From: Glycera tridactyla
Lineage: Eukaryota
Assembly: GCA_965644265.1 (NCBI GenBank)
Contig: OZ286462.1
Span: 38,192,001 to 38,256,000, forward strand
Direction: 5' to 3'
Length of the DNA: 64,000 bases
Under the pieces are notes generated by a model. The model was not told the origin of the DNA, made no database searches, and saw nothing but the letters and a program-made list of their open reading frames with translations. Below, piece by piece: positions 38 to 53,268 of the stretch; the stretch's first letter is position 1, and every line of letters starts with the position of its first letter. The position numbers and the translations under genes are program-made.

Positions 38-289
38 CTCCAGCTCCATCTGGGTGAGAGGTGTAACCGGTGGTATGGCGGATGGTGGATTGGTGGCGCT
101 CCGGGCCTGAGCAGCAAGATTGTTGGCAGATGGCGCTGCAGTGTAGCGAGGCGTCTTCGTGGGAGATGCCGTATAACGTGGATAATCCCAAGGTTGAACC
201 CACGGTGCCTTCACTCTCTCATCCTCGGACTGTGACCGTATGGGAGATGTCGTCTGACTGGATGGTGCACTTCCGCGACTGCGTGGATC
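38..289 (-). CDS. Internal coding exon, Ser/Pro/Thr-rich (DPRSRGSAPSSQTTSP...PWVQPWDYPRY...PVTPLTQMELE); probable protocadherin cytoplasmic exon
   Basis: Acceptor ccacctttttgatttcag|GAT at 289 and donor GAG|GTAGGA at 38. 252 nt, open only in phase 0-0, GC/CpG-rich like the Pcdh exons. Assignment to the protocadherin is inferred from phase and composition only. Confidence 0.7.

Positions 290-2884: not shown

Positions 2885-2887
<3 letters not shown>

Positions 2888-2968
<81 letters not shown>
2888..2968. repeat. (TG)n + (GCGT)n microsatellite
   Basis: Seen directly. Confidence 0.98.
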
Positions 2969-3119
2969 ATGTAGAGTGAAACCTGTGATGAGCGAGCCCC
3001 GTTGAGATCCTCACTTGTTTTGCAAGACCACAAGTTCAGAACTTGATTTTCTATTTGACAAAGTCAAACATACTGGTACACCCAACAAAAGGATACCTGT
3101 CATGATGGATCTGGGGTGG

Positions 3120-3254
3120 NNNNNNNNNNNNNNNNNNNNNNNNNNNNNNNNNNNNNNNNNNNNNNNNNNNNNNNNNNNNNNNNNNNNNNNNNNNNNNNNN
3201 NNNNNNNNNNNNNNNNNNNNNNNNNNNNNNNNNNNNNNNNNNNNNNNNNNNNNN
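3120..3254. other. Assembly gap (135 N)
   Basis: N run. Confidence 1.
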
Positions 3255-7239: not shown

Positions 7240-7481
7240 CTACACCGCGCCAAAATGTTCGGTAGAGAATGCAAGATCAAAGATGCTGTACAACTGCTCC
7301 TGGTCGCGATTCAGATTGAGTGGAAGTCGGAGCTGGTTGATGCAAGTGTTGCTGCTGGGCATTGCCATGCCCTCTTCAAATATTATACATGGAGGACAGG
7401 TAAATCCAAGTACTGGCTCCGACTCACTGCCAGTTGCCAACAGAAGAATCTTCTCCAGGTTTATATCTCCTCTCTTACCAC
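7240..7481 (-). CDS. HECT unit terminal exon: C-lobe with catalytic Cys (SNTC) and stop
   Basis: Acceptor tctgtttattgcag|GT. Encodes ILLLATGSESEPVLGF...PSSNTCINQLRLP...EHFGAV*. AATAAA occurs downstream on the minus strand at about 6336-6341 and 5767-5772. Confidence 0.92.
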
Positions 7482-10400
7482 CTGCAATAAACAGAATGAA
7501 ACCAATCAACATTTGTCAGAGCGAGTAATTCATAGGGATCAGGTCATTCAAATACCCAATATGCTGAATACAAAGTGGAATTCTGGTCCATCTCTGATTA
7601 GAAAATGGCAAATAAAGTAGTCAACTGGATGGCAGCAGACAAATACATACAAAGTAGCGGCAAATACTTTTTGTCAGTGATTGCTGGTTTGATAACATGG
7701 GAGAATCCAGACTCTTACATCTTTCCAAATATAGTTTCAGCAACAATACATGTGGTTTTCCATCAATGACTGGTTTATTGGATGGTTTGCTATCTCATGA
7801 GCAACAGCGAGCTATATTGTGATGACGAAGAAATAAGCATGAGAGGGGCATTCAAAAATACTCCTTCTGACCCCAAATAGAAGGTGATATATGAATATCA
7901 CCAACACTTGATTTTTCATTTTCAATATGCATCACTAAGGCAAGCTTTGATGATTTCCTCAGAATGAAAGCTGAAATTGCTCACTAGTGCATGAATCCAC
8001 ACTATTTTAATGCATTCCTTGGAGATCAGCATATGAGTTATATTCCAAAACATCATGTTTTCCATCCATGAACATATGCTGCTGAGTGATCTGCTTCCAA
8101 AAGGATGTCGTATGAAATTGACATGAAGGAGTTTACCAAGTGACTATTTTCTGTTCAGAATATTTATTTCTATGCATCTACTTACATGTGTATTGTGAAT
8201 GTATGATACACATGCCATTCCATTGTGTGATTCACCCCATTTCAAAAGGCTGAGTTAGATCCATAATGAGGGCGTGAAACAAAAACCCCAGCTTACCTTG
8301 CACATCCTTGATGTACTGAAGGAAGAATTTGTAGGAAGCTTCCTCTTTCTGTCTTTTGTTATTACCATGCTCCGAGAACTTGGGTTTCAGTAGATGAAGT
8401 AGTTTATTCCTTGATAATGGCTGAGCAGCTGTCCTGATCAACAGGAACTCCAGTACCGGTCTTTCATTCAATAACTACAACAAACCAAGAGTGGGGATTA
8501 CAATAAACTGATACACTCAAATTGAGAAAGCAAACAACAGAATACAATATATTCAATACTAAAGTAATGAATCCATGGTGACAGGGTTTCTTCATTGATA
8601 CATATCAGCATTTGCATGTGACATATAATTCATAAAATTCTAGCAATAGAAGATTGGTTATGCAATATTAGTATGGAATTACAAGTTGAAGGATGACAGA
8701 ATGGAAGCAAAGTTAATCGCGGCCTATGTCCTTCTTTGGAATCTACCAATCACAATATTCTAATCAATGAAAAGACATTTGACAGAGTTGTGGATTCCAC
8801 AAATGCTAGTCTATAATTGTGAGATAAAACACAATGTGGGTGCCAACCAATTTGTCTTGAAAAAGTCTTATCTCTCATTAAATTCCAGCTATTTTAATTC
8901 AATCTGTCTACATTATTTAGGATGAAACTGATACCCCAATTGCATTTTCATATGAGTGCTGAGACAGTTAGGAGAAATATTCATTACCTGGATGATGCCG
9001 AGTTCATTGAGGCCCTCATGTAGCTGCATCTCTGCTGGACTGAGTTCAACAGTCAATGGGTTTCGAAGTCGTTTGATCAGATTTTGGCTCAGGAAGCATG
9101 GCAGTGGTCCATTTTGCAGAATGCTTGCAGCTGTGAACAAAGGCACATACAGCATATCAGTCATTTTTCTCTTGCACAATCTTGAAACAGCATTTCATGT
9201 GATGATGAGTATTTTAGACTGAATAATATTCCATTCTTTTTTTCTCTGGCTGCAAACCTTCATTAAATTCTCATTCTACCAATACAAATATCAACTTCTT
9301 GAATGCTCATCTAATTCAGCACATTTGTCGTACTTCCATCTCCGAATTTCTGAGGAGAGAATATTTTTGTGAGTTATTAACAATGATTTAGTCCAGCTTC
9401 TCTAGCCCATTCTCTAAATAACTCTTCAGAATAAAGTGGGTTTCACCTTGAAGGAATACATAACCGGACCATACTACTTTCTTGCAATGATTTATCATGA
9501 ACAGAGGGGAGATTAGTAACTAGATATGATGATGGCAAATTGCCATCAAAATTTTTAGGAAATATTTGGCTATTGCTTGGAAAGAGAGTCACAAGTGTCT
9601 GCTCAATCAAAAAATCTGATTATGGATTTTAGATAAGACACAATTTGGTGTAAGAATAAGGTACACTTTTATCCAGTGTGGTTCACGATGGATACTTACC
9701 CATGAGTCTCCCCGCAGCATAATAGTGTCGTTTTTGAAGGCTACCTGGATTATCACAAAGTGTGTACCCTTCATCCCCTTCAATGAACAGTCTCTCTTGA
9801 ATGGCTTTCAGAACCAGATGAAGGAATTCACGGCGAGGCCCACCATAATCAGCTGCTTCCTCTCCATAAAATATGACCTCTAGTGGTACACGTAAGTTAA
9901 TCTCCTGCTGCGTGAATTCATCCATTGCATCCTCAAATATACGATATCGGGAGACCCGAAGCTGAGACGTCTCACCCTCAATACTTGAGGAGTCATCAGA
10001 CAAGTCCAAAGGACGTCCCATCATGATTTTTTGCTGATATATGCGAAGAATTTCAACTGGATCATGTATTTTCTTTGTTTCTTGCACTGTCTCTGCCACA
10101 CACATGAGGACAGATCGTAAGTTCAAGCTGCTGCTCGAGGATGTATGGGACACATTTGAAGGAAAGTCACTCTTAATCATCTTGGGGCTGGAAGATGGTG
10201 ATGATCGTGGACTGTGAACATCGGGTATTGGAGCCAGACTAAAGGATGTATCTCTTGGCAGGTTTGGTGAGGTAGAGCCAGATGACACTCCTGTGTCGGA
10301 ATCTGGAATCCTCTGATCACTTGACACCAAACTGAGTGATGATACCTCAGAGATTGTTTGTGACCTTTCAAAGAAACCCTCCGATAATCCTGTATCAGAG

Positions 10401-13400
10401 TCCACCAAACTTCTACGGTGCAAGGATGTGTGTGAGTTGGTTGGTGTCCTCTCATTTTGACCACCTGGCACTCCATTAGTATATCGAGAAACTCTACTGG
10501 GCGGTCGCCGGATAGGATGGAATGTTCGCAGTAAACTGTGTGGATTTATGACTTCAGAGTCAGAAATACAGTTAGAATTACTTGCAGTCCGAAACACCCC
10601 AGTATCTGAATTTCGGTAGGAAGGACCCCGGGTGGGTGAGAGCACCAAATCAGAGTTGCGACGTGGACCATATCCAGAGTTTCTAGGAGGAGGCCGCCTA
10701 TACACAGGACGATTCTGCCTTCCAAACTGAGTGACAACTGGTATGTTTGAATTATCCGTATCAGCATCAGACTCTGTCATACTGGAATCGACTGGAACAA
10801 TGCTCGGCTGACTCATATATGAGCTGCTAGAGTCGAAACTAGCGTTGATCATCCCAGGATTGGATGACGTCATACGGTGGCTGTCATAACTGATGGTTGT
10901 CATTGGCATCATCAGTGATGATGCTCGACTGATGGCTAGGGATGATGAACGACTCGGGGCATTCGGTCGCCCTGACTGATGGACAGCCATCATAGGAAGC
11001 TCCTGAAACAGGGGAAGATCAAATTAAATCTCAATTTTTCAATATCATATGAGTAATAATAAATGTGATCAGTACCCAATTTGATTAGTCCAAACGGGAT
11101 GGTACAAATTATATTCACTAATAATTGTGTGGAAATCTAACCAATGGCTTGAACACAATACGATCAAATGATCACATGGGTCAATGCATCGGCACACAAA
11201 ACAGCTTGTTACCACACAGGCAAGGCAGTTGATGCCATCCTGGCAGTTGATGCCATCCTGGAGATCCAGGTTATAAATCACAAGAATTCAGAAAATTTCT
11301 GAGAATGCAACTTGAGCATCCACAGGTGTGTCATGAAACACAATTTCATTCCAAACAAGATTGATATTGTACATCTTCATACAATCTCTACAGCAAACTC
11401 TTCCTTTTTTTCTGGCTCTCCCTCTGATATAAAGGTGAAAAAGCATGAATCACATGGAAGTGTCGAGCTGATCATGAATACCATAAATTTGATGGTTCCA
11501 CCTTAAGCGATATCCAATGAAAACACTTGGGGGCACATCATTTCTGTCAATGTCACATGACAAGCGAAGGTGAGTTATGAAAGCTGTCATTCACACCAAA
11601 TTTGATGCTGGTTTTTAGTGAAACTCTTCTGTGAATGGTTGCTCTTTATTCACCTTGAATTGATTTGCTTGTCTAAGACTTGACACATCATCCTTAACTG
11701 AGTTCACTGATAATATCCATGAAAAAAGACCGCCTTCAGTAGCTTAGAGATTTGCCTTTATAGGGATGTGGTCTTTATGAAGAGGTCATTTACTGTTCAA
11801 AATACAACTATGGTCACAGATCAGCTTTATAGAGAGGTGGTCTTCAGAGCAGGTTTGACTGTACTTTACAACTTCATGACATTTTCCCCCCAAATAATTT
11901 CTTGAATTTGAATATCTGCTTCCATTATCTGAATACCATTAAGTCACCGGTGTGGCCCTTGCTTCTATAGAATTCATCAGATCCTAATTGTTTTGCCATA
12001 GTGAAATATTCACCCTGGAGTCACTCACCATATTATGGCTGGGTATACAGTCCTGTAGATGTTTCCTGAGTGAATCAGAGGGCACATTGACACCACAGTG
12101 GAAGCATGGCTTCATCTCAAGAATCGACTCTGAGCTCAGCTCTTCATCCATAGCAAGGTCCTTCTCCTTTGGACGGATGTAGACTGTCCCAGCTGGCAAA
12201 AGTCGCAGTTCTTCTGCTGATAGACAGCCATCATACACAAACTTGAGATCGGGGTTCTCCGAGTTGTTATCTTTTGCCAGAATCACTATACCTCCTCCTT
12301 CTTGCATCTTGGGAAAATGCCTGAAGAAAAAAATGAAAATCGAATAAATTTCAATGAAAACATTTATGATGTTGTGTACCTGCATTTTTATCATTAATCC
12401 CAAATCATCAAAGAAAGGAGAACATTCTCTTGCAGCAGCTTTTACTCCTTGGAGAAGTACAATACATGTGGGAGACTGTCACCATCTCATTTGAGAGACA
12501 GCTTTGTGGTCTCTCATTACAGGTTTTACTGCATAAATCAAATAGAAAGAAATCATGTCAAGAACCAAATGGTATGCATCCACTGTCACCTCTCACAAAA
12601 GCAATGAAAATGCTATGAAGATTTCTTTCACAAGAACAAGTGCTTATTCATCATGGATCTGGATTAAAACCATCACTCACAGTGTAGTTTTCGGCAGAGA
12701 AGTGCTTCTTCATTTCTCTCTCCTAATTTTGCTTTCCCACTCAAATTACCATTTCTATACAATTACCTTACATGACCCTGCATACTGACAGCTCAACACA
12801 TGAGCATCTATCATGTTAGTGCCCTCTAGCATCTCAAACAATGTCCTACATGGGGCCATTATGGTTGCAGCAGGTTTGGAAGACATCTGGAGGCAAACAC
12901 ATGTACTACTGGGCTTGGTCTTGCAGTGAGTGCATGTCCACAGATCAAGGTGTTATTGCATCTCTATTTCTGCACATCCCAAGCAACATCCATGAATCAA
13001 ATTGAATATTTTGGATATTTGAAGGTACATAATTCAACTATTGAAAGTATGAAATTCCTCTCTACTCTAGATGCCAACCATAAGTGGTCTCTCTACAAAA
13101 AGTGGTTCTCAAAAGAGTACAGACTCCCCAAAAAGGTTATAATGAACCATCCTTGAGTATGAAAATACAGTCACAATTTCTATTCAGCAGCATGCAATGT
13201 TTTTGTTGTTTTTGTCACTGCAAAAATATCTATAATAAATTCAGGGATGTGATTAATTAAAACCAAAACCCTGAAAACCTGACTGGAGGAACTTTCTATC
13301 AAGATTTTATGGGCCAAGAAACACCAGCAACTGCCAACAAATGGCTACGATTGATTTATCTCCACTAATTCTGGTTCAATTTCCAAGTCCACAATAATCA

Positions 13401-15076
13401 ACATAAAATTCTCACTCAGAATATATGCATGGAGTGCTGCATTCATGATAAAATATATGCAGAAATCAGGGGATATACAGAACAATCGGATCCCTGTCTG
13501 ATTGAAAGTTTTACTGTGATATGCAAAAGATACTCACATCGAGATGACTTTGTTCACATCTCCAGCACTAGCATAGTAAGGAAATGCTAGGGTCTTCAGT
13601 CCAAGACCGTTGGCGAGGAGTAAACAATGTTCGCCGGCCGTCGGGACAGTCTTGCTGTGCGTGTATGCCAAACTCATGACAGGCTTCAGCCAGGCACGAA
13701 CTGCAACAAACAAGAAACAAGGATGCACATCAGTTTCCCATCATTCTATTTCAATCGATGTAGAAATCAAATCACGTAGATTGGAATTAACAATTAACTA
13801 AATTTTCGTAATCCATTTTCTATTTCAGGCGCAGCCAGAAACTGATATTGTGGAGAGGGTGATTCATAAGCCTGTGAGGAGTAATCAGTTTAAACTGTTC
13901 AAGATGTCCCTTCTGCACCAAGGCCACCTGCCTATAACGACCACTCAAAACGACCAAAGCATGATTGTGATCAACGAACTAAAATGCCTCTCTACAAAGG
14001 CCACCTGACAACAACGACCATTCCTCGTGTGACCCAGAGAGATCCAAATGTATCTGTGATATGTGAGCATATTTCCGTGAACACATTCTCATCATTTGTT
14101 TGCAAATAGTGGAACTTGTCCGCAACAACCTGCGTTTGTTGCAATGAAAAGTGATCATCATAGAATGGCGGTCTGTGTAGAGAGGTTGTTGACTGTGGGA
14201 ACATAATATCATGATCACAGCTTAGGATAGCCTCGGTAGGCTGGTGGTCTCTATATATAGGTGGTCTCTCAAGCAGGTTCCACTGTTTGCCTGAGACAAG
14301 CATGCAGCTGTTTTGAGATAATTTTAGACAAATTTTAGCTGCTCGCCATTCACAGGTACAAATGTTTTCTCGATTGAGAATTTGGGGACATGCTTACAGT
14401 CTGATGAAATGATGACAACGTTCTTATCAGATTTGTGCATAAACGTAAATCAGGAGTTATTTACAGTCAGACCTACTCTATGCCGACAACCAGGATGACA
14501 GACTCAAGTGCATGCTTAGAATCGGTTCATGCTAAGTTCAGGTAGATTGAAGTGAAAATAACCTGGTGGGATACCAGCCAGTGGGAGAGAAGACAAATAG
14601 ACTAAACATGGGGAACATCAATCAATTTTTTCTCAAACTATCACACTAACTGAAAGGATTGCATCCATTATGGTGTTAATTGCTTCACTGTGACAAGGTG
14701 TGCCATCATCATCAACAAGTGACTTGTACAGTGAAACCTGCGACAAGATCCCCTGATGAGAGACCCCCTCCTATGGGAGATCACCTCTTTTGAAAGACCA
14801 TTTTGGTGACATTTAGAGTGGTCTTTTGTTGCAGGACTCACTGTACCCCAGTTGACTTATGCTGGCCTTTTCAAGCAATTTTTTTCACATTACAATCTGT
14901 TATCTGATCAAGGCTACTGCATAGGCAGTATTATTCATTTTTTAGAAAAAGGTTCCCCATGGATAAGTTTCAGTAGAAGTACCTGGTGGTGTATGTATTC
15001 AGATTTACTACTCACCTCTTGATATGGGATTCCTCCTCATATATGGTGCCAGGTCACGGTTACGTGATCGAGTCGC
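7240..15076 (-). CDS. G2E3-like HECT-type E3 ubiquitin ligase (7 exons, 2382 nt including stop; 5' end not identified)
   Basis: Seven exons with canonical GT-AG sites and consistent phases (0-1-2-0-1-0-1-stop). HECT motifs: GEEAADYGGPRREF, YYAAGRLMAASILQNGPLPCFL, catalytic PSSNTCINQLRLP and C-terminal HFGAV. The N-terminal GLG...FPK..GGG...YIRP region and C-x2-C...H-x3-C finger match the G2E3-like family as I recall it. Confidence 0.88.
8297..8474 (-). CDS. HECT unit exon 6 (LLNERPVLEFLL...YIKDVQ)
   Basis: Acceptor tcttggtttgttgtag|TTA and donor CAA G|GTAAGC. 178 nt, phase 0 to 1. Confidence 0.9.
8988..9130 (-). CDS. HECT unit exon 5 (ASILQNGPLPCFLS...LGIIQ)
   Basis: Acceptor cctttgttcacag|CT and donor CAG|GTAATG. 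143 nt, phase 1 to 0. Confidence 0.9.
9700..11002 (-). CDS. HECT unit exon 4: long Ser/Pro/Arg-rich low-complexity region plus start of HECT N-lobe
   Basis: Acceptor cttcccctgtttcag|GAG and donor ATG G|GTAAGT. 1303 nt, phase 0 to 1. Corresponds to the 436-aa ORF. Confidence 0.92.
11725..11861. mobile_element. Partial MITE (right end)
   Basis: Ends agagaggtggtcttcagagcaggtttgactg|TA. Confidence 0.7.
12029..12320 (-). CDS. HECT unit exon 3 (HFPKMQEGGG...YIRP...CFHC..HLQDC zinc finger)
   Basis: Acceptor catttttttcttcag|G and donor AAT ATG|GTGAGT. 292 nt, phase 2 to 0. Confidence 0.88.
13538..13700 (-). CDS. HECT unit exon 2 (VRAWLKPVMSLAYTHSKTVPTAGEHCLLLANGLGLKTLAFP...)
   Basis: Acceptor ttcttgtttgttgcag|TT and donor TCG AT|GTGAGT. 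163 nt, phase 1 to 2. Confidence 0.85.
13886..14285. mobile_element. Longer degenerate MITE of the same superfamily
   Basis: cagtttaaactg...caggttccactg ends, with subterminal gaccac/gtggtc blocks. Confidence 0.65.
14729..14843. mobile_element. MITE in a HECT-unit intron
   Basis: TA|cagtgaaacctg...caggactcactg|TA. Confidence 0.8.
15016..15076 (-). CDS. HECT unit exon 1 (ATRSRNRDLAPYMRRNPISR), 61 nt, phase 0 to 1
   Basis: Acceptor tttcttttt ctgtattccag|GCG and donor AGAG|GTGAGT. Its phase matches the next exon. Confidence 0.7.
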
Positions 15077-18000
15077 CTGGAATACAGAAAAAGAAAAACA
15101 TTAGCTAGGTGCATAGAATTCGTCACTACATTCTGTCTAGCCAGATGTCACCACAGCTGCATATATTGCTCTTTTTTTTAATACTTAATCACTTTGACTA
15201 CTATATAAATTATATTGTTTTACAAAGTCTTTTAATGTGTTTTTTCCCCAGGAGTTGAATTATAGGAATGATCCATCATCCAGACAATGTGACTCTCATT
15301 ATCACAAGCATTTTTTGACTATGACTAAATTATGGCTAAATTGGTTGAAGAATGACATCAATCTGCAAAAATGTGATAATTTATGCAGCAGAATAAAACA
15401 CCTGATATCAATCCATCATGAATTCATTACTAAATTATGAGCCATTCTTTACACATCCATTAATATTTTTCAGCCAGTTGCTCATATCAGGTATATTTCT
15501 ATAATGGGTAAAATCTATTGTGCATGATGTAATCTGGATTCCATACACACAAAAACTTCATTCAGTGAAACGGCAAAAAAGCATTCATCAGACTATGCCA
15601 GAAAAGAAAGGTGCCCTGCAGTACCAGTCTCTTGTGAGAGGTGGTCTCTCATCGCAGGTTTCACTGCATACGCACAAATTGCCCAAAAAAAATGACTGCC
15701 ATTTTCCAATCACCAGAACTTCAAATGAGAAGAAAAGTTGTTAGGAGTCTTACAGATGTGTTCATATGACTTTCAAAATCACATTCAGTTTCAAAGGATC
15801 ATGAGATTATTAGCTTTCAGGATGGATTTATACTGACTTTGTCAGTTATGAACTCATCCATACTTCAAGTCTGAAGAGTTCAATCTACAATGAATATATG
15901 CTGAATATAAGTACAATCATCTCTGATAATTCAACACAAGTGACCATATATTCATACAGCTGAAACTTTAAAAGGTAACACAAAGCAAGAGAAGAGGAAA
16001 CTGAAAGATACCAAAAATTATATCATAGTAGGCTGGTCTAATGAATGGGTGATGATGCACAAAATTCAGCGTAGATATGGCCAATGATTCAGACCCTTTT
16101 TTTGATGATGTCTTCTTATCCAAATATCTTTTTTTTTCTTGCTCTTATGAACAATATGTGCAAAACAAAGCAAAGGTTGACATGATATACACTGCATCAA
16201 ATCAATTTATTGTCAGCTTTCTGTTTCATTTCTTTGATTCAAGTCACATCGTTTGCAAAATGCTTGAGATGAAATGAACTGAACACACAGCTACACAGAG
16301 CAACTTCAAAGGACTTGGAAGCATAGGCAGCAGGGAGAAGCAGGGAAGGCAGTGTGCTCTACAGGACCCTACTCACACATGCGAAATAAGCAGTAATAGT
16401 AGCAGGGAAAGCAGCAGTTGATCACAGCAGCAAGCAACACTCGATGTAGAAACACATTTAGCAGATGCAAATAATAGGAACAACATCACAACCCTCACTC
16501 GGATTACCATATCACCCTCAACAGGGCAGATCAACTTTTTATTCATGAGATTTACCATAATTTCTCTAATGAAGACCAACGAAAATGATCTTTTTTTAAT
16601 ACAATGGCCTAAGCCTGCTTGAAATGAAAAATTGAAACCCATCAATATCTTAGATATTTTTTAATGAGGTGGCAAATTTTCGACAGAAAAGATTTCTGAT
16701 TACTTCATGGCTCATCACAGCCACCTTCATAATATCTTGATAAGAGCAAAGCTTGTGTTATAAGAAGAAAGCTTATCTTCTATACAAACTACAATGAAAT
16801 TCAATGTAATAACCAAAACAGGTGTCCTAACAACATCAAATGGTCACCTATTATTATATGATCCCGTATCACAAAATGAATTTTGCGACGAATTTGGAAC
16901 AAAATATTGATATTTCAGCATACACAATACAGATGCAGCTTATTCAAGAATGGAGAAATTCATGTTCTGGAGTAGATCATGAATGGTGCTACAAACTCTC
17001 ATATTTTCCTATGACACTTCCCATCTATGAAGGGTGCCTAGATTCCTACAAAGGATACACCCTCTCAAGGCTCCACCCAAGCACAAAATTTGAGAATGAC
17101 TGATTGAGATCATAATAGCTTGTGACGACCAGGAGGCCAGATGGATAAATCAATCAAACTGAATGCTTGTCAGAACAAATATATCACAAAACCAATATAT
17201 TTATCATTAAGTTACATAAAAAGATGAATAAATAAATAAATATATATACATGAACAAAAATTGAAAAATCCTGAAAATCACAGGCGGTGGTCTTAGACCC
17301 GACTCGATTTCTTGTAGATGTTGATTAGACATAGACTAGGCACTAGAAAGTTAGTCTAGATTGTGATAACGCTTTCTATAACCACTGTTTAGCTGACACC
17401 CAGGATCTTCTTTTTCTGTGGGGAATTATGTAAGATGAAAGCAAGTGTGTGTGTGTGGTGCGGAACAGTGTGAAAGAAATACCGAATATAACATACAGAT
17501 TGAATTTCAGCACAGTATATGCTTTCACACTGGGAATATAAATCAATGTAATTACGAAGTGCAATTTGGTGAAATTACTGAAACCGGGTCATATGATGGT
17601 GATGATCACTATGTCATTCATGCATATTCGTCAGTGGGGTGTCCTCTGGTTTTCCAACTTCAAACTATCATCCCTAACTGGCAAGCCATAGACAATTTTA
17701 GAATATGGTCGATGAAGTTTTTGTCCGATTTTTTGTGACAAAGATCAACTAATCCTAGGAATGAATTTGCGGCGTTCTGCGCGGGCATTCGACTTGCCAA
17801 CTTTTTTTATTATGAGAAAATCAAAAGTTTTCAATTCACAGCTGAAGCTGCATATAACTACCTCGAAATGAAACAAATATAATGGTCATCTTTGCCAAAC
17901 TCAGCTTTGGAGGTAGCACTGCATTCAAGAGGGGAAATAAATTGTGTAGCAGAAATCTGCATTCGCGAATATTCAGTGCTATCAAATGGGGCCTGGTTAT

Positions 18001-20803
18001 GTATATCTGAACTTGACTATCAAATGAGGTCACAGATTAAGGGAGGTCCACATATGAGTTAAATGGAATTAAACCCTGTTATGTGGGTAAATGCAATGGG
18101 AAGCAATTGTCCCTTTTGATATAACAGTGATGTCAATAAATGGGTTTCCGTGAATAGTATGCATTGAATCTAAGACAGCTAATTGTATTTTATATTCAAA
18201 TATTTACAGGGGATTACAGTTCCTGCCTCTGTGCCAAAACTGCATGTGTGCTACAAAAGAATAACAATTACAAAAACATTGTGGGATGAATTCAGACTAG
18301 TAACATGAGATTTGGTCCTACTCACTGAAGAGTATGATTAAGGCAAATTTTGGTTTACCTCAAGTCTCGTACCAATATTGTGGTTCATGCATCACCAAAT
18401 GTTGTGGTGTTTGGTGAATGATAATGGGTTCTTATTCAGATATTACAGCAAACCTTTACTCCTTTCCAGGAATGCATGTGTGTCATTTTGAATCAAGAAT
18501 AAGCTGTGGTAGGTTCTAGCATTCATTTTAATAAATAGAAGGAAATTGAAAGAAGAACCAAATCTTGGATACTTCCAAATATATAGCAAGAAACAAAATT
18601 GCATCAGAATACAGACAGATATGAATAATCACCTTCATTGAAGGAATAAGATATAAAGGAAAGAACAAAAATAATTGGAAGCCAATCAAGATAGGGGCTA
18701 GAGGTGATCTACGTAGCACATAAAGCGATCCTATTCAGCGGGCAGACTGAGATCATGCAACTGAGAGTGGGCAAAGGAGAACAACATCTAGGCTGCATTT
18801 ATTATATTGATACTTACTTTGTCACTATGGAGGATGGGTAAGGGCCTTGTGTCAAATGTACGATGAAAAATCCAATGACGCCTCAAAAATGTACGGAATG
18901 ATGCGAGGTAATAGTGTCTATCGATTGCTTCCACAGAAGCTTGTTAAAATGGATACAAACATGAAAGTGGTTTAATAAGTGCATGAATATAATATCTGCT
19001 CCTGGGAATATATTACGTGCAACAATATATGTGATTTGGTGCCACCCTCTCTCCTTTTCACCCTGTGCTAGTTGTCACCATACCAAAGACACTAGAGGGA
19101 CCTCTCTACGCTCTTTGACCATACTTGGGTCCTAGCACCTAGTGGATCAATCCCACCAACAAGTGTCAGTTTGATAAGTAATTGGATAGCTCTGTCAGAG
19201 GTATGGTGTACATATCACACATCAGCATGTCATATATGAAGCAAAGGTGAAACAAATGGATGGTTGCGTCCATTTGTTGAGAAACACAAATCATTTTTTC
19301 TGGAACTATATTCCATTTGTAATGACTCAGATGATTAAATTCCCACTTCATCCCCAATATTTGTATGTGTGAATCATATATGCTCCAAAAGCTAGCCATC
19401 CATCACCTATCCAATTAATTCACATAATATTTGGTAATGAATCAATTGAATAGGCCAGTCATCTAAAGAATACTACAATTGGATCATCAGATGCAATATG
19501 CAAGTCTACCACGGGTGATTCTGACAATTTCAAAAAGCAGAACATGAGTGTAATATTTTGTGTCATTCTATGAATGTAATGTCACCAAAATATCTACAGG
19601 AAACTCAGAATGAAGATATTCATAAAACAAATGTCTAATAATTTATAGATTCTGATATACAGATTTTTTTAATTTGAAATGATAACATTGATATAGAATC
19701 ATCATTGCAGAGATGTGAGAAATATGAGAAACATGAGAAAAGTATTAAAGATTTCATCTCAGATCTCTATAACTTTTGCACCATATTGAGATTATAATTT
19801 CATGATATTTAAGTCATCGCATTATGTCAACCATGGTACGGAATGAGCTTCAAAAATTAAGCTCTCATATATGTGCCAAGCCAATTGAATCATTATCCGG
19901 GCAAAACAGCAATGACCAAACTTGTCCCATCAGTATGTAGGGAGCTCGATGTTAAGAACAGCAGCAGGGATAAAGCAAAGCAAAGCTTCAGAAATGTCAT
20001 GATATGCAGTTAAGACAGCAATGAATCCTTGCTTTCATATCACAGAAAATGTAAGGATGACTGCGATCATACACTGATACCCGTGAAATATGTGAACTAG
20101 ATGGACACCAAATTCATATTCGTATTTCTATTTTGATCTCTCCCATGAAATATCATTTGTCTTCATAGTCATTTGTGATTGGGCAAAACTGGTATGGAAC
20201 CAAAAAGAGGGTTTTAGTCTGATGATAGTTGATTATTCACAAGGAGATCCATTATCCACATATATATATATATACATATATGATGCAAATGATAAATAGG
20301 TTATTTAGTTTGAGTGAAATGGTAAACCATCCTAATGTAAATGTTATTCACTGAAATGTACATAATGGTAGTACTACACATTGTCTACAAATCTGATGTG
20401 AGTGATATCTGATATATATATGTAATGGTTGTTATTATACAGTCTCAACACCTCTGATGTAAGTGATATTGACAAAACATACACCAAATAGAACTCTGGA
20501 TTACACAATCTAACTAGGATGATAGTATTGGGAGTATAAATAATGCCACTCAATCAGAATCCCATATGGTTAAATCTGACAAGACTACCAACAGTGTCAT
20601 GTAATCGATTTCCACACAACTCATGTGATATGCAGGGCATGAATGAATGTTTTTTTTTTCATATAATCGTCCAAGTGATTGTATTCTCATCAGAATTTCA
20701 CAACTTTTGGAACTTGTTTGCAAGATGTTTTGAGGTGGCACACAATGTTAACATGTTATAATATCTACATTTTTCTATATTATATCATGAAAATACAACT
20801 CAC

Positions 20804-22722
20804 CTCAATGATGGGCTTCTCAATGGCTTGTGGCCACATCATGTGATAGTCATCCGTCTCTCCAGGTGCCCGTCCAATGTCCACCACAAACTTAACCTCC
20901 TTTTTCTGTCTCTCACTATCGGAGAGTATCACGTGACCATTAGGTCTGTCATCATGATACTCATCTTTACTCAAGTTATCATCTGTGGAATCATCACGAT
21001 CTGTAGTCACTCTCAACGGATACTGTGGCTTTTTGCGATTCGCACCTCCTTTCCGTCGTGCTGTGACGACAATCGCGGTTATGATGATCGTAAGTATGAT
21101 GAAGGTAATGACGACAATGAGAATGATGAAACTGGATCCACTGAAGAAGTCACTATCTGCTCGAGCTTGTGGTGAAATCAGCGTGGTCGTGATGACGATA
21201 TTCAAATCAGCAGTTGACGCTAAAGCAGGAGTTCCACTATCATGCACTGTTACTTCCAATCTAAAAACCTCATTATCTAGTCCACTCAAACTACTGGACA
21301 AAATAATTTTCCCACTGTTGGGATCAATGGTAAAGGTGTCATTACCATTTGAAAGGCTATGTACTAAGTAGGAATTGGGACCTGCATCGTTATCATAGGC
21401 ATCAATTTCCCCGATGATACTTCCGACTTTTGTTCCGATGTATACATTGATTGTATTGTTGTATCTACTCGGGAAGTTGATGACGGGCCAGTTATCATTG
21501 ATATCCTTGATAGTGATAGTTACATTGACACGGTTGAACATGTTGGTATATCCTTCATTACTAGCCAAGGCGACAAGGTGATACACAGCTATCACTTCGC
21601 GGTCGATTTCAGCACGTATTTTGACCTCACCAGTTTGTTCGTCAAGTGTGAACGGTATGGGATCTGTGATTGACGGGTCCCACAAGTATGTGATCTGGCT
21701 GTAAGGTGCAGTATCGGGATCGACTGCTTCTATAAAACCTAACGATTTACCGATCTCGTCATTCTCAACAACTTGGAAGGCATACGATGAATTTAGAAAT
21801 CGGGGTTTGATGTCATTAGTATCCATTATGTGAATACTGAGAGTGACTGTGGTGGTCTTCGCATAATGTCCTTGATCCGTCCCCGTTACCAACACCTCAT
21901 ACTCTGTTTCCACCTCATAATCGAAGGCCACTTTAGTTGTAATTACACCAGAGATGGAGTCACAGTACAAGATTTCCGTATCAGTCTCATTGAGCAAGTG
22001 ATACTTGATCGCAGCATTTCGACCAATATCGCCATCTGTCGCATTCACTCTGGTAACTATCGTACCTGGCGGCTCATTCTCGTATAAACTCACAGTATAC
22101 AAATTTTGGAAGAATACGGGGACAAAATCGTTATCATCCAGAACAGTGACCGGTATATTGATGGCAGATCTCCGCTGTGGTATTCCTCCATCGTGACATG
22201 TAAGGATGATGACATACGAATCCTGCGTCTCACGATCCAACATCACGTTGGTTAGGATCGTTAACTCGGTGTGTTCATCGTTGAGATAATTGATGTAAAA
22301 TAAACCATCCAGGTCAATGTAGCATGTCAAACGACCATTTTCGCCCCCGTCTGGATCATCGATGGTGACATGAGCAACAAATGCGCCCGGTCGCATGTTC
22401 TCTTGAACTTCGGCTCGCCCACTCGTACTCATCGAATTCAGAATGATCTGCGGAGTATGATCATTCACGTCTTCGACAGTTACGATCACCTTGGCATAAC
22501 TCGGTAGGGAGTTGGGCCCCATGTCCGTAGCAATCACGCGAAACTGGTAGTTGTTGCCCTGCTCATAGTCGAGGGCCAGCTTGAGATATACGTCGCCACT
22601 GTTCTCTTTGATCCCGAAGATGGTGAGGTACTCTTCTGGTGTGTCATCAGCGAATGAGTAGACTACCTGCCCACTGGCCCCCTCATCGGGATCATATGCA
22701 TTCACCGACAAAATTGTGGTAC
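20804..22722 (-). CDS. Pcdh: Protocadherin exon B: EC3-EC7, TM, juxtamembrane tail
   Basis: Acceptor cttcttgttgcag|GT at 22722 (phase 1). Donor GAG|GTGAGT at 20804 (phase 0). 1919 nt = 2 + 639 codons. Confidence 0.95.
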
Positions 22723-25700
22723 CTGCAACAAGAAGGAGAGAGGCCATCAATTGATTTGCATTTATTCCTTTTTGAGGAGAAATTTCTAAAGGGCTACTGG
22801 CATGCATCATCATCCAAATACAGTTGAACCTCCTCTAAAGACCACCTCCCTATAAAGACCACCCTGAGTTGCGACCGTTGTAGTATTTTCAACAGTAGCT
22901 GACCTCTCCATAAAGACCACCTCCCTATAAAGACCACTTTTTGATGCGACTGTATATGCAGATTATATGAAATCAAGTTTGTTGGCCAGTGGAAGCCTTT
23001 GTGATCCAGTTATGCAACTGAAAACTTAATCCAATGAAAAATGGTAACATAATCTTTCGAAATCTTCCCACCACTTTTGTATTTGACAGACATTGATACC
23101 TTATATCATTGCATAAAGAATTATTATGGCACAGGAAATATTAGCCATTTCTATACTTTACTCATATTAATGATATTATGTCTAGATATCCACTTTCAAT
23201 CTAGGCAATAATATATAGAATGCTTTGAGATTTCACAAACAACTCAAAAAATATACCTTCAATTCAGTAGAAGATTGACAAAGATGACCATTCAATATCA
23301 GGGATGACTCCATTACACGTGTCGGAATGATCTGTTCCTCAATGAATTTGAGGGGTACCCTTGATATCTAGCATTTCAATGTGAATACAAAGGACCATAG
23401 GCCCCTGAGGCTGTTGATTATATATGGTAGACTCTAAGGCAAGTCATATGGACCTCAGGGTACCACATGCCAACCTCAACTAAGAAAGATGATACCACAC
23501 TCATCCAACACAATGACAATGCCAGCAAGACCATGAACAATTGGACAAGTCATCAGTGAAACACTGAGTCAAAGTTTCAGGCACTTTAAATTTCAGACCC
23601 CTAAAGAAGGGAGTCCTGATGGCCAAGCCAAGATTGAAGGAATATTGACCCCTTTCCAACTCCCCCTACAGCTCCCCGAGGACAGCTATTGAATACTCAA
23701 CCTCTCTAAGAATAAGTGTGAACTTGATAGAAAAGAGAGGGGCCCACACCAGAGAACTTGTTGGCACCAGGCAATGACAGAGTGTAGTTAGGGAATGAGT
23801 ATGCAAGATGAATACACTGATACCACCAAAATTGAAAATCAATCATAAGTATGAAAGTATGACAATGCCAGCAGGACCATGAACAGCCAGACTAACCATC
23901 ACACTTGTATGGGCTGGAAGCATCAGTGATAAACCCAGTAGGCTATTCCTGATGAATTCTTCATCAACATATTTCTTGAGATACTTGCTGCCCACACTGA
24001 CACCAACAACAAAATTGCACAAAGCCTTCAAACAGGAACTGTAACTTATTCATACATTAAACTCAGTCATAAATGAAGAAGGGTACAAAAAGATTGCTTA
24101 TCTTCTATTTCCATTCTGGCATAGTCACTAAAAGATTGAGCATACAGTTTGAAAGGATTCGCCATGAACAATCAAAAAACAACAAATTCAATCTACAGAC
24201 TTGTGTTCAGATTGCTTCTATGTAATATGAATGAGATGCTTAGAGAGTGAAATTGATGCGACTGTTGGTACATGAAATATTCAACAAGGAAGTGATCCTC
24301 GAGTGTCTGCAATGACAGAAAACAACGCAGAGTAAGCCTCTGCAACAAAAATGAATAAAAGGGAATAATGAAAGTTTCAGATATTCTACATGCTGCAGAT
24401 AATATGTTAGTATAAAAAAGCGGCATGGCACATCAGTAAAGTTTCATTTCTCATTCAATTTACCACAACCATGCCAAAATTTCATCTGCTCATTCATCAG
24501 ATCAATGATGAATTTATGTGCCTTTTAGGACAGAGTATAATGTTATGATTTTGGTGATAATGCCGCTGTAAGTGCCTTTTCATGAATTTATGTACCCATG
24601 ATCCCCATTCTGTGTGCTCTTCTGTCACGGCAATAGTGAATCCAAGTGCTGTTTTAAAATTTGATGAGCTCCTCTGACTGAGCCTCCCTCCCCGCCCACC
24701 TGCTCTCTCTCTCCCCCCCCCCCCCTCTCTCTCTTTCTCTGACTCTCTTTCATAGTTGAATATTACTTGCCAATGAAATGACCATTTTCACTGTAAGACA
24801 AGTCAATCAGCCGGCATGGACTTTCCTCTGTTCCCATGAAATCAAAATGGGATGACCAAGCAGAGAAGATCTTGGTGATGTAATCAAAAGCACCTCACCT
24901 CATAATATTGAGAACCAATATAATAAAAATTACAGATTATTTGAGGTGATCAGAACTTTAACAGAGAGGCTTCTGCAGACATACAAGTCAATTCTTATTG
25001 ATGTTTTTCAAACTTATAGACAATCATGACATAGCCAAATATGTTGTTCTTCCAGGGAAAGCAGGCCTTCTGTGATGTGGGAGAATGGCTTATACTGTAC
25101 AACTGTAGTGGGTGAATGCAACCAATCAGGGTTCAGTTGAGCATACCCAATCATTGATTTTTTGAACACAACCAATCTCCACCATGTGATATATGAAGGG
25201 AGAGGGCTGATGTAAGAAAGGAAGAGGATGCTGCCTGGGAAATTAGAAGATTGATATTGAGAATCTACAAACCACGTGGAGTATCTTCGGGAACATTAAC
25301 TTCGTATTCTCCTCGGTCGAAAGTTGGATTGTTGTCATTGACGTCCATGACTGTGACCTCTACCCAGAGGGTACCAGTCTGACTGGGATGACCTCCGTCA
25401 TAGGCGTACACCTTCATCCGGTAAAAACTCTGACGTTCTCGATCCAAACGAGCGGCTAACACTAAGTGAATTCCGGTTATTTCTCCTGTGGCGGACTCCG
25501 CTTTCTGAAGATCGAACATCCCTGAGTCATCATCTAACGTATAATCCTGAATTCCGAACGTTTGGCTATCACTATCCTCAGCAGATGGTAAGGGGAATGG
25601 CGTGTCGACCATTGTCGTTTCCGGTATTGCTAGCGTAACTAACTCCTCGGGAAATGTCGGTACATTATCATTCTGATCTAAAATGGATACAGTCACTTTT

Positions 25701-26272
25701 ATGATGTGAAATATTTGATTCAGTTGTACTATTACATTCATGGGAATATCACATGTTTCACTCATCATACAAATAGAGTCACGATCAATCACTTGCGACG
25801 TCCGTAACATCCCATAGGGGGAATCGATTGCGAACTTGCCAATGTTTCTACTAGAGGCCACTTGCGGTGTTGGTGAAAGTTGAAACTGAAGTTGTTCAAT
25901 GATGGAACTATTATATACACTCCGTAATAATGAGTCATGAGAAACATTTCCTATGACGAAATTAGCAGCGGACTGCTCAAGTAGTTGGTATTCTAACTGT
26001 GATTGAATTTCGGCTTTCACACCTTGTAAAGATGCTAGTAACAGTATTGTCCATACATGAAGTATCCAGAGTAACCGGTCTTTCCAAGTGTGAAAACAAA
26101 TGTAGCATTTTTTGCTCCGTCCATGTTTTATCACTAGGTGATGATGATGGTGGCATTTCTGGGAGTATTTCTTGTTGGTTTTTGTCACCCCGTGCATCCT
26201 GTTACAATGGCATGTGCTAGAGGTGTCATTGTAGCCATCCATTCTCCCTGTATTCCCGTTGTCTAATGTCAT
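20804..26272 (-). CDS. Pcdh: Protocadherin, 7 cadherin repeats + TM + start of cytoplasmic tail (two exons, 973 codons visible; continues through a phase-0 donor)
   Basis: ORFs 25265-26383 and 20780-22813 join in frame at CCA CGT G|gtttgt...cttcttgttgcag|GT ACC, giving EDTPRGTTILSVNAYDPDEG. Six DxNDxxP-type linkers delimit EC1-EC7. EC1 has the protocadherin DRxxxC-x5-C motif (DRDSICMMSETC). A hydrophobic signal segment (LLWILHVWTILLLASLQGVKA) and a TM (FIILIVVITFIILTIIITAIVVTA-RRK) are present. The start Met at 26272 is inferred. Confidence 0.95.
22821..22952. mobile_element. MITE (partly deleted) in the protocadherin intron, about 100 bp from the 3' splice site
   Basis: TA|cagttgaacc...gactg|TA, with repeated taaagaccacct blocks. 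Same family as the 36644 copy in reverse orientation. Confidence 0.8.
23488..23692 (+). repeat. Unclassified interspersed repeat with decayed coding character (copy 1, in the Pcdh intron)
   Basis: Aligns at roughly 80% (estimated by eye) to the reverse complement of 61555-61774. A short third piece lies at about 23860-23885. Confidence 0.8.
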
Positions 26273-26322
26273 GTTATCTACGAGTACATTGTCCACAGGC
26301 TGTTGATGGTCACTGCCGGCAT
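25273..26322 (-). CDS. Pcdh: Protocadherin exon A: N-terminal leader, signal sequence, EC1-EC2, start of EC3
   Basis: Acceptor tttttctgtctgtttcag|ATG at 26322. First in-frame ATG at 26272. Donor G|GTTTGT at 25273/25272 (phase 1). Confidence 0.92.
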
Positions 26323-29300
26323 CTGAAACAGACAGAAAAAAGCAACGATAAGAAAAAGTGTAAAAGCTTACAAAAACTGTCACATCAATCTGTCAGATGC
26401 TCTATAGCCATGGTTTAACCAGTCCTGATCATGCAGGATGCTAAAAAACATAAAAGAGAGCTCACTACCGATCAATCAAAGTAAAAATCTTTCATGATAT
26501 ATACACCGTCAGTATAGATGGCCAAGACAGTTTCCTGCTTGGTTCAGAGTATAAGCAAGACAGGTTCAATCATAAATTCAAATTTTGCAATTTTTCTCAT
26601 CAAACATTTTCAAGGCAACACAAATTCACCAATGCACAGGACATATGCACATCATTGGATTGATTGATTTGAACTACAAAGAGAACAACCAATTTCAATG
26701 GAGAACTATCATGAATTGTCTTCAGTGTGAAAAAGAATTCCTATTAGTATCAACTCTGGTCAGTTATGGCGATTTTCGTATCTGCATACACTTATTTATA
26801 AAGCTAGTATATTCCATTTGATGTCAAGGGATCCCTTGATAAGATATCACACTGTACGAATAACTTCTGAATGTATCCAAAGTTCAGACTGACACCTTGT
26901 GGACTGCCAATATGTTATTGCATACTGGCACCTAGTGTCCATACAAGGCACTAGTCATGTGACATGCAAGCTGCGGGTTGGTTGAACCAGCATGGGCTGA
27001 AGCAATATGGCCTCTGCTGCTTAATGAGTTCATGCCTGACCGTAATCTAGATGCCCGCCTTTAATCTCGATTTATGCTGCCAATCAAGGCAAGATAAAGT
27101 AGATCACAATGTTTCACCTGTATCCAGGTGGCATAGCTAGCTAAGGCAGCACTTGATATCAGTACCTTACAGCATGGATGTGTTATTTACATGGGGAGAT
27201 AAGGGCATGCAGTATATTTTTTATCTTACCCACCCTGAAAGAATGACCTGCATGCTAAATTTCCATCGTATAGAACTGAAGATTGTTTATGCCAGTGAGG
27301 GATGCAATTTACAGTCAAACTCTCTTATGGAGTTACCTCTCGAGAAAGGCAACCTCTTGCTATGAATGCAATCATAGTAAACATCCTCTCAACAAAGGCT
27401 GCTTTCTGTCACAAACAGGGAAAGCATTTGCAGATGGGCTCGCCAGAATTTCCATCTCATTGGTATCTGCAAGAAAATCCACCTTTGTATTTGGCCAAAA
27501 TTGTAATCTTACCTGACTACAGTGCAACTTGAATATCATTTTCATGAGTATATTATTGAATAGTTTCCCGTTTAATGTCATGTATAACCCAAAGGATTAT
27601 TTGTGGGTAATAAGACATTTTCAGGTCTAGTGCCATTGCAATACTTGAAGCAAGTGCCAAGCACAGTTGTACCAGTAAACCTGCCACGAAAGACCTTAAA
27701 AAAGAGACCACCCAAGATGGAATACCAGTTGAATCTTGCTTTACGATGCACATGTTGCGTGGATTACACGTGCAAATTCAGCATATTCACTTTCAAACAG
27801 AAATAGCAATAGCTGGATGAAACACTTTCCAGGATATCTCTCCAGGAATAATAAAATGTGGATCTGAATGAGTTTTTTTTCCTGGAGAAGCTGCAGAGGT
27901 TGAGAAATCATTAGGGAAAGGGAAGTAAGAGAAAAATAATTAGTCCATGTACGGGAGTGGTAAATAGATGACCACACCCATGTCATCTCTTCAAGAAGTT
28001 TGTGATAGGGCTTAGTAGAGTTCACACTGATTACAAAAGAGATGGATTGAGCATGTATGTCATGCATTCATGGAGGACAAATGCCCCAATTATGTGAGAG
28101 AAAGAAGAGGTGGCTGGCCCCCCATTGTAGGGGGCAGGCTCCCCGAGGGAGGCCTACCAAAAGGAGGTGCAAAACGTGTCCCATGCAGCCATGGGGCATA
28201 GCACTTAAAACTTCATTCTCTTCAGGTATCGGAGGTATTCAGCAGTGGGAGATGCATTCACGTGCATTTAGGCCCTTCTGACATGCACTCAATTAACTCA
28301 GTGACACCTCAAACAAAAGAACCACACCTTGCTTTGATTGCAACACCCCCCTTCTGAGCAAGCCATCTCTCTGGTGAGTTAGGGAGTGTTTCACCAACAT
28401 GCTCAATCCCCATGAGCATCACTAGAGTCACTAACAACGAGTGGTACTTCCTGCTGATTCGGGAGGGCCCTAATGTTCGGTAGGATGTTCCCCTGGGTGT
28501 ACATCATGTAATTATCACATGCTGCTCACACCAAATCTGACATGATGGCATTCCTGCTCATTAGACCATGATGTCTGTCACCTAAATATGGCAGCCATCT
28601 TGGAAAAGAAAAAGCCCCAATAAATCACATAAGGTTGACAACATCTTCCTTAACATTTGGCAACACCAGATAATATAGGATATAGGATTCAACATTCATG
28701 TAGGAATCGGTTAAACTCCTACCTATTATTGCATATGAATACCATATTTGACCGTATTCTAGGTATGCAATTGTGGAACAAAAATCAAGAACTGTGATAG
28801 AAGTTCAATATATTCGACCATGGCGTAAACAATCTCATATTCTTCACTGTTACTGAAGATACTGCCTCAGGGGGGATCACTGTCATCCCACAGGTGAACA
28901 TTAAGGAAACATCGAATTCTGAGCCATTCAACTGTGAAAAATGTGTCCAGGTCACAGAAAACACTGTAAATGGAATGGCGCCGAACACTGATAAATGACG
29001 AGAGAAGAGGACAGATTTGGAAAAGACCAACTAGTCACCTTTTTTATGTGGACAGAGAGCTGTTCCTGTCTTGTAAACTCAATAATTCAGCGGCCGCTTC
29101 TGGGCTAGGAAATGAGAGTGTACATCTTTCCAACGCACACCCGCACACAATCATTAACCCTTTCCCACATCACTTCAATATCTCCTAATTATTAAATTCA
29201 CATTTTTCCCAGGATTGACCATTACATATTTATGGACAATTGCTGGATTACCCCCCCCCCCAAAAAAAAAATGAAAATTAAGCACTGGTGAGCCAGTGCC

Positions 29301-29767: not shown

Positions 29768-30128
29768 NNNNNNNNNNNNNNNNNNNNNNNNNNNNNNNNN
29801 NNNNNNNNNNNNNNNNNNNNNNNNNNNNNNNNNNNNNNNNNNNNNNNNNNNNNNNNNNNNNNNNNNNNNNNNNNNNNNNNNNNNNNNNNNNNNNNNNNNN
29901 NNNNNNNNNNNNNNNNNNNNNNNNNNNNNNNNNNNNNNNNNNNNNNNNNNNNNNNNNNNNNNNNNNNNNNNNNNNNNNNNNNNNNNNNNNNNNNNNNNNN
30001 NNNNNNNNNNNNNNNNNNNNNNNNNNNNNNNNNNNNNNNNNNNNNNNNNNNNNNNNNNNNNNNNNNNNNNNNNNNNNNNNNNNNNNNNNNNNNNNNNNNN
30101 NNNNNNNNNNNNNNNNNNNNNNNNNNNN
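29768..30128. other. Assembly gap (361 N)
   Basis: N run. Confidence 1.
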
Positions 30129-48459: not shown

Positions 48460-48628
48460 NNNNNNNNNNNNNNNNNNNNNNNNNNNNNNNNNNNNNNNNN
48501 NNNNNNNNNNNNNNNNNNNNNNNNNNNNNNNNNNNNNNNNNNNNNNNNNNNNNNNNNNNNNNNNNNNNNNNNNNNNNNNNNNNNNNNNNNNNNNNNNNNN
48601 NNNNNNNNNNNNNNNNNNNNNNNNNNNN
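48460..48628. other. Assembly gap (169 N)
   Basis: N run. Confidence 1.
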
Positions 48629-53043: not shown

Positions 53044-53268
53044 NNNNNNNNNNNNNNNNNNNNNNNNNNNNNNNNNNNNNNNNNNNNNNNNNNNNNNNNN
53101 NNNNNNNNNNNNNNNNNNNNNNNNNNNNNNNNNNNNNNNNNNNNNNNNNNNNNNNNNNNNNNNNNNNNNNNNNNNNNNNNNNNNNNNNNNNNNNNNNNNN
53201 NNNNNNNNNNNNNNNNNNNNNNNNNNNNNNNNNNNNNNNNNNNNNNNNNNNNNNNNNNNNNNNNNNNN
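53044..53268. other. Assembly gap (225 N)
   Basis: N run. Confidence 1.

Follow-up and report, generated by a model that had tools for sequence, protein, structure and literature searches.

The window analysed here is a 64,000-nucleotide stretch of DNA from Glycera tridactyla (GenBank assembly GCA_965644265.1, contig OZ286462.1, positions 38,192,001 to 38,256,000 of the forward strand), and all coordinates below count from its first letter. It carries exons of a protocadherin and exons of a HECT-type ubiquitin ligase gene, all on the minus strand, and the HECT gene is intact and lies in the same orientation inside a long protocadherin intron. An earlier note on this DNA had proposed that the two sets of exons form one adhesion receptor with a built-in ubiquitin ligase. 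We found that the sequence features described in that note are all present on the minus strand. On balance, however, comparison with related loci and proteins leans against an obligate receptor-ligase. The features of the locus, in the order of transcription, are:

25273-26272, minus strand: protocadherin exon A, with signal peptide and cadherin repeats EC1-EC2 (Pfam Cadherin_2 and Cadherin; tblastn of orthologues P0001-P0008).
20804-22722, minus strand: protocadherin exon B, with five more cadherin repeats, transmembrane helix and cytoplasmic stretch (Pfam Cadherin in 5 stretches, E 4.5e-78).
15077-20803, minus strand: interval of 5.7 kb from the protocadherin donor to the first recognised HECT exon; no family-type first exon recognised.
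15016-15076, minus strand: internal HECT-gene exon of 61 nucleotides (nt), coding for the basic linker ATRSRNRDLAPYMRRNPISR; entered in phase 0, left in phase 1, with an in-frame Met at 15040.
13538-13700, minus strand: 163-nt exon of the HECT gene, coding for the first half of the predicted beta-grasp-like module (RAWLKPVMSLAY...GLGLKTLAF...), found by tblastn with P0132, P0138 and P0157.
12029-12320, minus strand: 292-nt exon of the HECT gene, which completes the module (FPKMQEGGG...VYIRPKEKDL) and carries a C-x2-C-x11-H-x3-C finger at 12106-12047.
9700-11002, minus strand: large HECT-gene exon, Ser-rich linker and then the start of the HECT unit (...FYGEEAADYGGPRREF...), with 47% identity to Argopecten P0121.
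8988-9130, minus strand: HECT exon of 143 nt, collinear with P0121 and P0127.
8297-8474, minus strand: HECT exon of 178 nt, placed by homologue alignment, its intron position common to bivalve and Lingula homologues.
7240-7481, minus strand: terminal HECT exon, C-lobe, with the SNTC Cys codon at 7344-7342, the Phe at -4 at 7254-7252 and the stop at 7242-7240.
38-289, minus strand: conserved protocadherin tail exon of 252 nt, phase 0 to phase 0, matching the next exon at orthologue loci L002, L003 and L006.

The protocadherin donor at 20804, joined to exon 15076-15016 and six more exons, gives exactly 1766 codons with zero internal stops. This open reading frame (ORF), which the earlier note had put at about 1766 residues, starts at ATG 26272 and consists of exon A (26272-25273), exon B (22722-20804) and the seven exons of the HECT gene (15076-15016, 13700-13538, 12320-12029, 11002-9700, 9130-8988, 8474-8297 and 7481-7240). 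The HECT-gene chain alone is open for 793 codons, and 13 of its 13 splice sites have the consensus AG/GT. Exon B ends, as had been stated, at a phase-0 donor without a stop, which we read directly as ...ATCATTGAG followed by gtgagt. The 61-nt exon indeed has a phase-0 entry and does not begin with an ATG (codon 13, at 15040, is the first Met in frame), and the six further in-phase exons lead to a HECT domain with SNTC at every coordinate and in every frame given before. The acceptor of the 61-nt exon (...ttctgtattccag) is strong, with a pyrimidine fraction of 0.9, and its donor reads AAGAG followed by gtgagt. Because this is a coding exon of the HECT gene, its openness in frame is expected anyway, and two independent genes match in phase with a chance of 1 in 3. 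Two other models of the HECT gene were rejected. A start at ATG 12307 is not tenable since that Met aligns with the Leu of a conserved FP(K/Q)L motif and is hence internal, and the frameshift that arises on joining 15016 to 12320 disappears because the 163-nt exon 13700-13538, found by tblastn with homologues, sits between them.

The upstream gene has a signal peptide, tandem cadherin repeats, one transmembrane helix and a cytoplasmic tail, and is a protocadherin; in Pfam the whole protein appears as Cadherin_2 and six Cadherin stretches. Exon A offers candidate start codons at 26272, 26242 and 26197 and ends in phase 1 (CGTG followed by gtttgt). The transmembrane helix in exon B, at 21130-21062 (FIILIVVITFIILTIIITAIVVT), was read directly from the sequence, as was the hydrophobic signal, and the cytoplasmic stretch carries a KKEVKF...WP...IIE motif before it ends in phase 0 at GAG followed by gtgagt. 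In a collection of 5.8 billion proteins, the nearest ones reach only 36-46% identity and come from ORF calls without annotation on contigs of invertebrates; the more distant named protocadherin matches come from annelids and molluscs. The protein collections contain neither of the window's proteins, and the top match has 46% identity for the protocadherin and 47% for the HECT protein. When the cytoplasmic part of P0001 was used as the query, with lengths of up to 1773 residues allowed, P0001 itself was the sole match. In each of the four closest proteins, the cytoplasmic motif KKEVKF...WP...I(E/Q) is followed by 'V...', read from the intron. Since the ORF calls of all four run on past I(E/Q) into the intron, the exon boundary at the donor after IE is old and conserved.

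The tail exon at 289-38 reads DPRSRG...EDERVKAPW...PPVTPLTQMELE followed by gtagga, and ends in PLTQMELE. At L002, L003 and L006, the orthologue loci, the big exon is followed after 2.3-2.9 kb by one that reads NPKAHS...EDDKLGPLW...SPIAPLTEMELE followed by gtaagt. It ends in PLTEMELE and is 77% conserved between two species. Global alignment of the window exon with the orthologue exon scored 48-49 against a shuffle mean of 21 (standard deviation 7), a score reached by 5-6 of 2000 shuffles; the matching eight-residue ending, placed at the donor in both, is far beyond chance. The exon surfaced in relaxed tblastn alone, and tblastx of the window against the orthologue flanks at 1e-3 gave nothing. 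From these alignments, exon 289-38 is likely the usual splice partner of donor 20804, and more protocadherin exons would lie past the window start, downstream of the tail exon. No HECT sequence was found at orthologue loci L002, L003 and L006. With the tail exon at 289-38 and the orthologue loci free of HECT sequence, the window protocadherin therefore has a 20.5-kb intron with a nested HECT unit. The protocadherin tail exon is thus kept at the orthologue loci, the HECT cassette is not in them, and no protocadherin lies beside the scallop or Lingula HECT homologue.

The window gene resembles the invertebrate protocadherins P0001-P0004 from unannotated contigs in its 36-46% identity over exon B, in the boundary after IE/IQ and in a next exon ending in MELE, and differs from them by an extra ectodomain intron (25272-22723) and by the 20.5-kb intron ahead of the tail exon, where theirs is 2.3-2.9 kb. 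The extra intron, 22723-25272 on the minus strand, is 2.5 kb long and in phase 1 and splits the ectodomain, and at orthologue loci L001, L002, L006 and L007 the ectodomain and the transmembrane region form a single unbroken ORF. The ratio of observed to expected CpG (CpG o/e) is 0.7-1.1 at 20500-23000 and 25000-26500, which are the protocadherin ectodomain exons, against 0.1-0.35 in the rest of 1-30000, and the high values of these two exons are reminiscent of the CpG-rich variable exons in vertebrate clustered protocadherins.

The gene structure of the HECT unit was compared with that of its homologues. In Lingula XP_013417019.1 (P0127), an ATG-bearing exon 1 of 210 nt ends in phase 0 and is followed by exons of 112, 169 and 259 nt that end in phases 1, 2 and 0. 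The 61-, 163- and 292-nt exons of the window show the same phase series, 0-1-2-0, at homologous positions; the 163-nt exon runs from phase 1 to phase 2 as Lingula exon 3 does, and the 61-nt exon aligns loosely with the basic stretch ahead of the conserved module in the homologues. The 3' intron positions are common to the window, Lingula, Pecten and Solemya. Since the 61-nt exon is the counterpart of Lingula internal exon 2, its phase-0 entry without an ATG is inherited and is not a sign of capture. It follows that its match in phase to the protocadherin donor is a coincidence with a chance of 1 in 3.

An exhaustive HMMER search for relatives of the HECT protein gave 2586 matches, of which the best 150 were inspected. 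All of these 150 are no longer than 896 residues, and the HECT unit is always C-terminal. The models in RefSeq for Lingula, Pecten and Antedon are stand-alone 'uncharacterized proteins' of 638-780 residues, and the other named members are GenBank hypothetical proteins of Pinctada, Tegillarca, Solemya and one fish. Ahead of the module, the N-termini of the members checked vary, being a SAM domain, a CARD-caspase pair, or an amphipathic helix with an S/T-rich stretch, and the Atlas neighbour clusters of the Lingula homologue carry SAM, Neuralized, UBX, CUE, PHD, WW and RCC1. No cadherin was found among the best 150 of the 2586 matches or in the Atlas neighbour clusters, so that within this scope the earlier statement that no cadherin is known to carry its own HECT domain held. 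A survey of HECT domain architectures likewise mentions no cadherin or transmembrane partner (PMC3673628). Epinephelus coioides KAL7400150.1 (P0245, 800 residues) has CARD, caspase and HECT in a single protein; it is a case of free swapping of N-terminal domains in the family, and such a composition hints that the family may act in innate immunity or in cell death.

Against the relatives with beta-grasp module, C2HC finger and short HECT unit, the HECT unit of the window has 36-43% identity with E-values down to 7e-83. Lingula XP_013417019.1, Pecten maximus XP_033748894.1, Antedon mediterranea XP_071947526.1 and Solemya velum KAL5008215.1 share with it the N-terminal module followed by a HECT unit of about 300 residues. 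The homologues of this type that we examined are free-standing, whereas the window copy lies in a protocadherin intron and has no recognised first exon of the SAM or helix type. In Lingula (L011:16965-19596) and Argopecten (L005:21450-25456), which belong to two phyla, a gene matching Pfam rva_4 (PF24764) lies tail to tail with the HECT homologue; the two neighbours are only faintly alike, and nothing similar is present in the window. In the gene model P0141 (L008:9940-10060), the start Met as annotated falls within the conserved ER.xLF motif of the family, and upstream of it the open frame extends to a likely acceptor, from which the model is probably truncated at its N-terminus.

The terminal exon alone matches Pfam HECT (PF00632) with 25.3 bits against a cut-off of 23.9, and Pfam picks up mainly the C-lobe of the unit. 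A profile built from the window and a scallop homologue matched 37 solved HECT chains, among them the N-lobe start of AREL1 (6jx5, E 1e-12), RSP5, WWP1, ITCH and E6AP, with E-values from 1e-12 to 1e-7, as well as the C-lobe of UBR5. The catalytic Cys is aligned in these comparisons: pSSNTCINQLRLPL of the window stands against pTAHTCFNQLCLPT of AREL1 and pTANTCISRLYVPL of UBR5. The protein ends in ...EHFGAV followed by the stop codon and has the Phe at -4; a Phe four residues from the HECT C-terminus is known to matter. The N-lobe start matches AREL1, RSP5 and WWP1, but at about 300 residues the unit falls about 50 residues short of the canonical 350-residue domain. Downstream, the first hexamers that resemble a poly(A) signal come after 746 and 898 nt.

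Upstream of the HECT unit, family members share a conserved module, RxW..LA..VPT..GLGxK..FPxL..GG..IYIRPxQxxL, followed by C-x2-C-x11-H-x3-C, and the 163-nt and 292-nt exons align along all of it. This finger pattern was seen in 18 family members, and its four zinc ligands are intact in the window. Pfam gave no match for the module or the finger upstream of the HECT unit. A UBZ4-like identity of the finger was not confirmed by Pfam, where homologues had only sub-threshold matches to XAF1, TRAFD1 and C2HC. An AlphaFold2 model of the Lingula module has a pLDDT of 86, and its best structural matches, though weak, are all ubiquitin-like beta-grasp folds (SAP18, RA/RBD, UBX, PB1 and TBCB-UBL), which suggests that the module may be a beta-grasp-like domain. 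The Ser-rich linker (about 10000-10600, minus strand) contains three DSDTG motifs (NSDTGVF, VDSDTGLSEGFF and IPDSDTGVSSGS) in a low-complexity background rich in S, P and R; these could be phospho-dependent recognition sites.

The HECT protein also resembles the G2E3-like class of Metazoa (class IV, PMC3673628), in which a divergent HECT domain is combined with variable N-terminal partners, and some of the Atlas clusters that neighbour the Lingula homologue bear the name G2/M phase-specific E3 ubiquitin-protein ligase-like. The window protein differs from G2E3 in having no PHD/RING-like fingers. Its catalytic Cys and Phe at -4 are both present; the HECT domain of human and murine G2E3 has been called non-functional (PMC3673628).

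From the conserved gene structures and the loci of relatives, we think it probable, with some reserve, that the protocadherin and the HECT unit are two separate genes, the latter nested in an intron of the former on the same strand, and that any fusion mRNA is a by-product. In this arrangement, the protocadherin, with its seven cadherin repeats and one transmembrane helix, would be made by splicing donor 20804 over 20.5 kb to 289-38 and then to exons beyond the window. The intron would hold a complete member of an uncharacterised G2E3-like HECT family whose protein would run from a basic linker through the beta-grasp-like domain, the C2HC zinc finger and the Ser-rich linker to the HECT unit of about 300 residues. 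Such a protein would be expected to act in the cytosol as a soluble E3, with ubiquitin passing from an E2 to its catalytic Cys. Transcription of the HECT gene would start at a short 5' exon of its own that has gone unrecognised, or translation would start at Met 15040. The in-frame fit to the protocadherin donor would be the phase coincidence described above, and a protocadherin-HECT mRNA its by-product. The exons, frames, homologies and conserved gene structures on which this proposal is built were observed directly; the splices actually used, the promoter and the ligase activity we infer from them.

Several observations weigh against two separate genes. The acceptor of the 61-nt exon is very strong and is the first downstream of 20804 with exon evidence, the frame is open through all 1766 codons, and the HECT family readily exchanges its N-terminal domains. 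An open frame and a terminal exon that follow a strong acceptor within an intron make a gene-trap-like layout, which should catch some host transcripts; with the phase-0 intron lying at the point of N-terminal attachment, some chimeric mRNA is thus plausible. In addition, the first exon of the HECT gene is missing from our models. Searches of the whole window with SAM- and helix-type N-termini by phmmer and hmmsearch at maximum sensitivity gave nothing, although their power is low for this poorly conserved part of the protein. Scans for an ATG leading to a phase-0 donor gave weak candidates only, at 16642-16556 and 17332-17282, and CpG o/e shows a small rise at 17-18 kb and no clear promoter signal in 15077-20803. 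The earlier note's failure to find a convincing dedicated first exon was therefore repeated with homologue N-termini and with the scans of ATGs and donors. The failed search may count as evidence for a fusion, but it is weak evidence because the family has short first exons with little conservation. Candidate 17332-17282 (minus strand), MSNQHLQEIESGLRPPP followed by gtgatt, starts like P0211 (MSNQLLDKCNELL...) and lies within the small CpG o/e rise, and the helix profile gives it no support.

The best-surviving alternative is that both outcomes are real isoforms: donor 20804 would have two partners, 289 for the classical tail and 15076 for a type-I membrane protein of 1766 residues. The mRNA of the second isoform would end at the poly(A) site of the HECT gene, the cassette having been captured without a first exon of its own, and the tail of beta-grasp domain, zinc finger and HECT ligase could let the receptor ubiquitinate itself or its neighbours directly. 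The uninterrupted 1766-codon ORF, a HECT ORF intact over 793 codons, the strong acceptor at 15076 as the first evidenced exon acceptor past the donor, and the lack of a recognisable HECT first exon within the window are all consistent with it. Moreover, the phase-0 intron before the 61-nt exon is the point at which the variable SAM, helix and CARD-caspase parts of the family are attached, and the topology is sound, since the HECT domain would be cytosolic. Yet the phase match alone has a 1-in-3 chance, and the failed search for a first exon counts for little in a family whose first exons are so short and variable. No cadherin-HECT protein appears among the best 150 of the 2586 relatives or in the Atlas clusters, the classical tail exon is intact and conserved, and the cassette is not in the orthologue loci. 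Exact scans of metagenome contigs for the junction 15016/13700 and for either junction of donor 20804, including ...CATCATTGAG/GCGACTCGATC (20804 joined to 15076), gave 0 matches. We regard the alternative isoform as unlikely, at roughly the weight of one chance among several. A little less probable again is its stronger form, in which a regulated alternative 3' end, arising by capture of a cassette without a first exon at the phase-0 intron where the family exchanges its N-terminal domains, would yield a 1766-residue single-pass receptor whose cytoplasmic tail combines an active HECT ligase with a zinc finger and a ubiquitin-like domain.

It is improbable that the HECT unit is a promoter-less partial duplicate without a first exon, not productively expressed, left unspliced or present only in rare aberrant transcripts, and too young to have gathered stop codons: no first exon was found, the absence of the cassette from the orthologue loci marks the arrangement as lineage-specific and the HECT family is large and mobile in gene order, but all seven exons keep an open frame over 793 codons with 13 of 13 consensus splice sites, and the catalytic Cys has been retained, as have the Phe at -4 and the four zinc ligands.

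The assembly of the window contains runs of N at 3120-3254, 29768-30128, 48460-48628 and 53044-53268, none of which touches the exons under discussion. A (CA)n microsatellite at 2850-3010 adjoins an assembly gap.

HECT ligases of the NEDD4 family reach membrane proteins in trans, via WW-PPxY contacts or adaptors, and transmembrane E3 receptors such as RNF43/ZNRF3 are of the RING type. If the fusion were true, it would be like both the NEDD4-family ligases and RNF43/ZNRF3 in holding a ligase at the membrane beside its substrates. To our knowledge, no cadherin or other transmembrane protein has a built-in HECT domain. The fusion, if real, would be the first case of a HECT E3 built into a cadherin, or indeed into any transmembrane protein, and it would couple adhesion signalling and ubiquitin ligation in one polypeptide, which is unprecedented. 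If the two genes are separate, as we favour, the locus would be an ordinary case of a same-strand nested gene, and a warning that neighbours in phase can yield false fusion models. The locus would also add a member and a description of gene structure to a widespread unnamed family in which a short HECT unit follows a putative beta-grasp domain and a C2HC finger.

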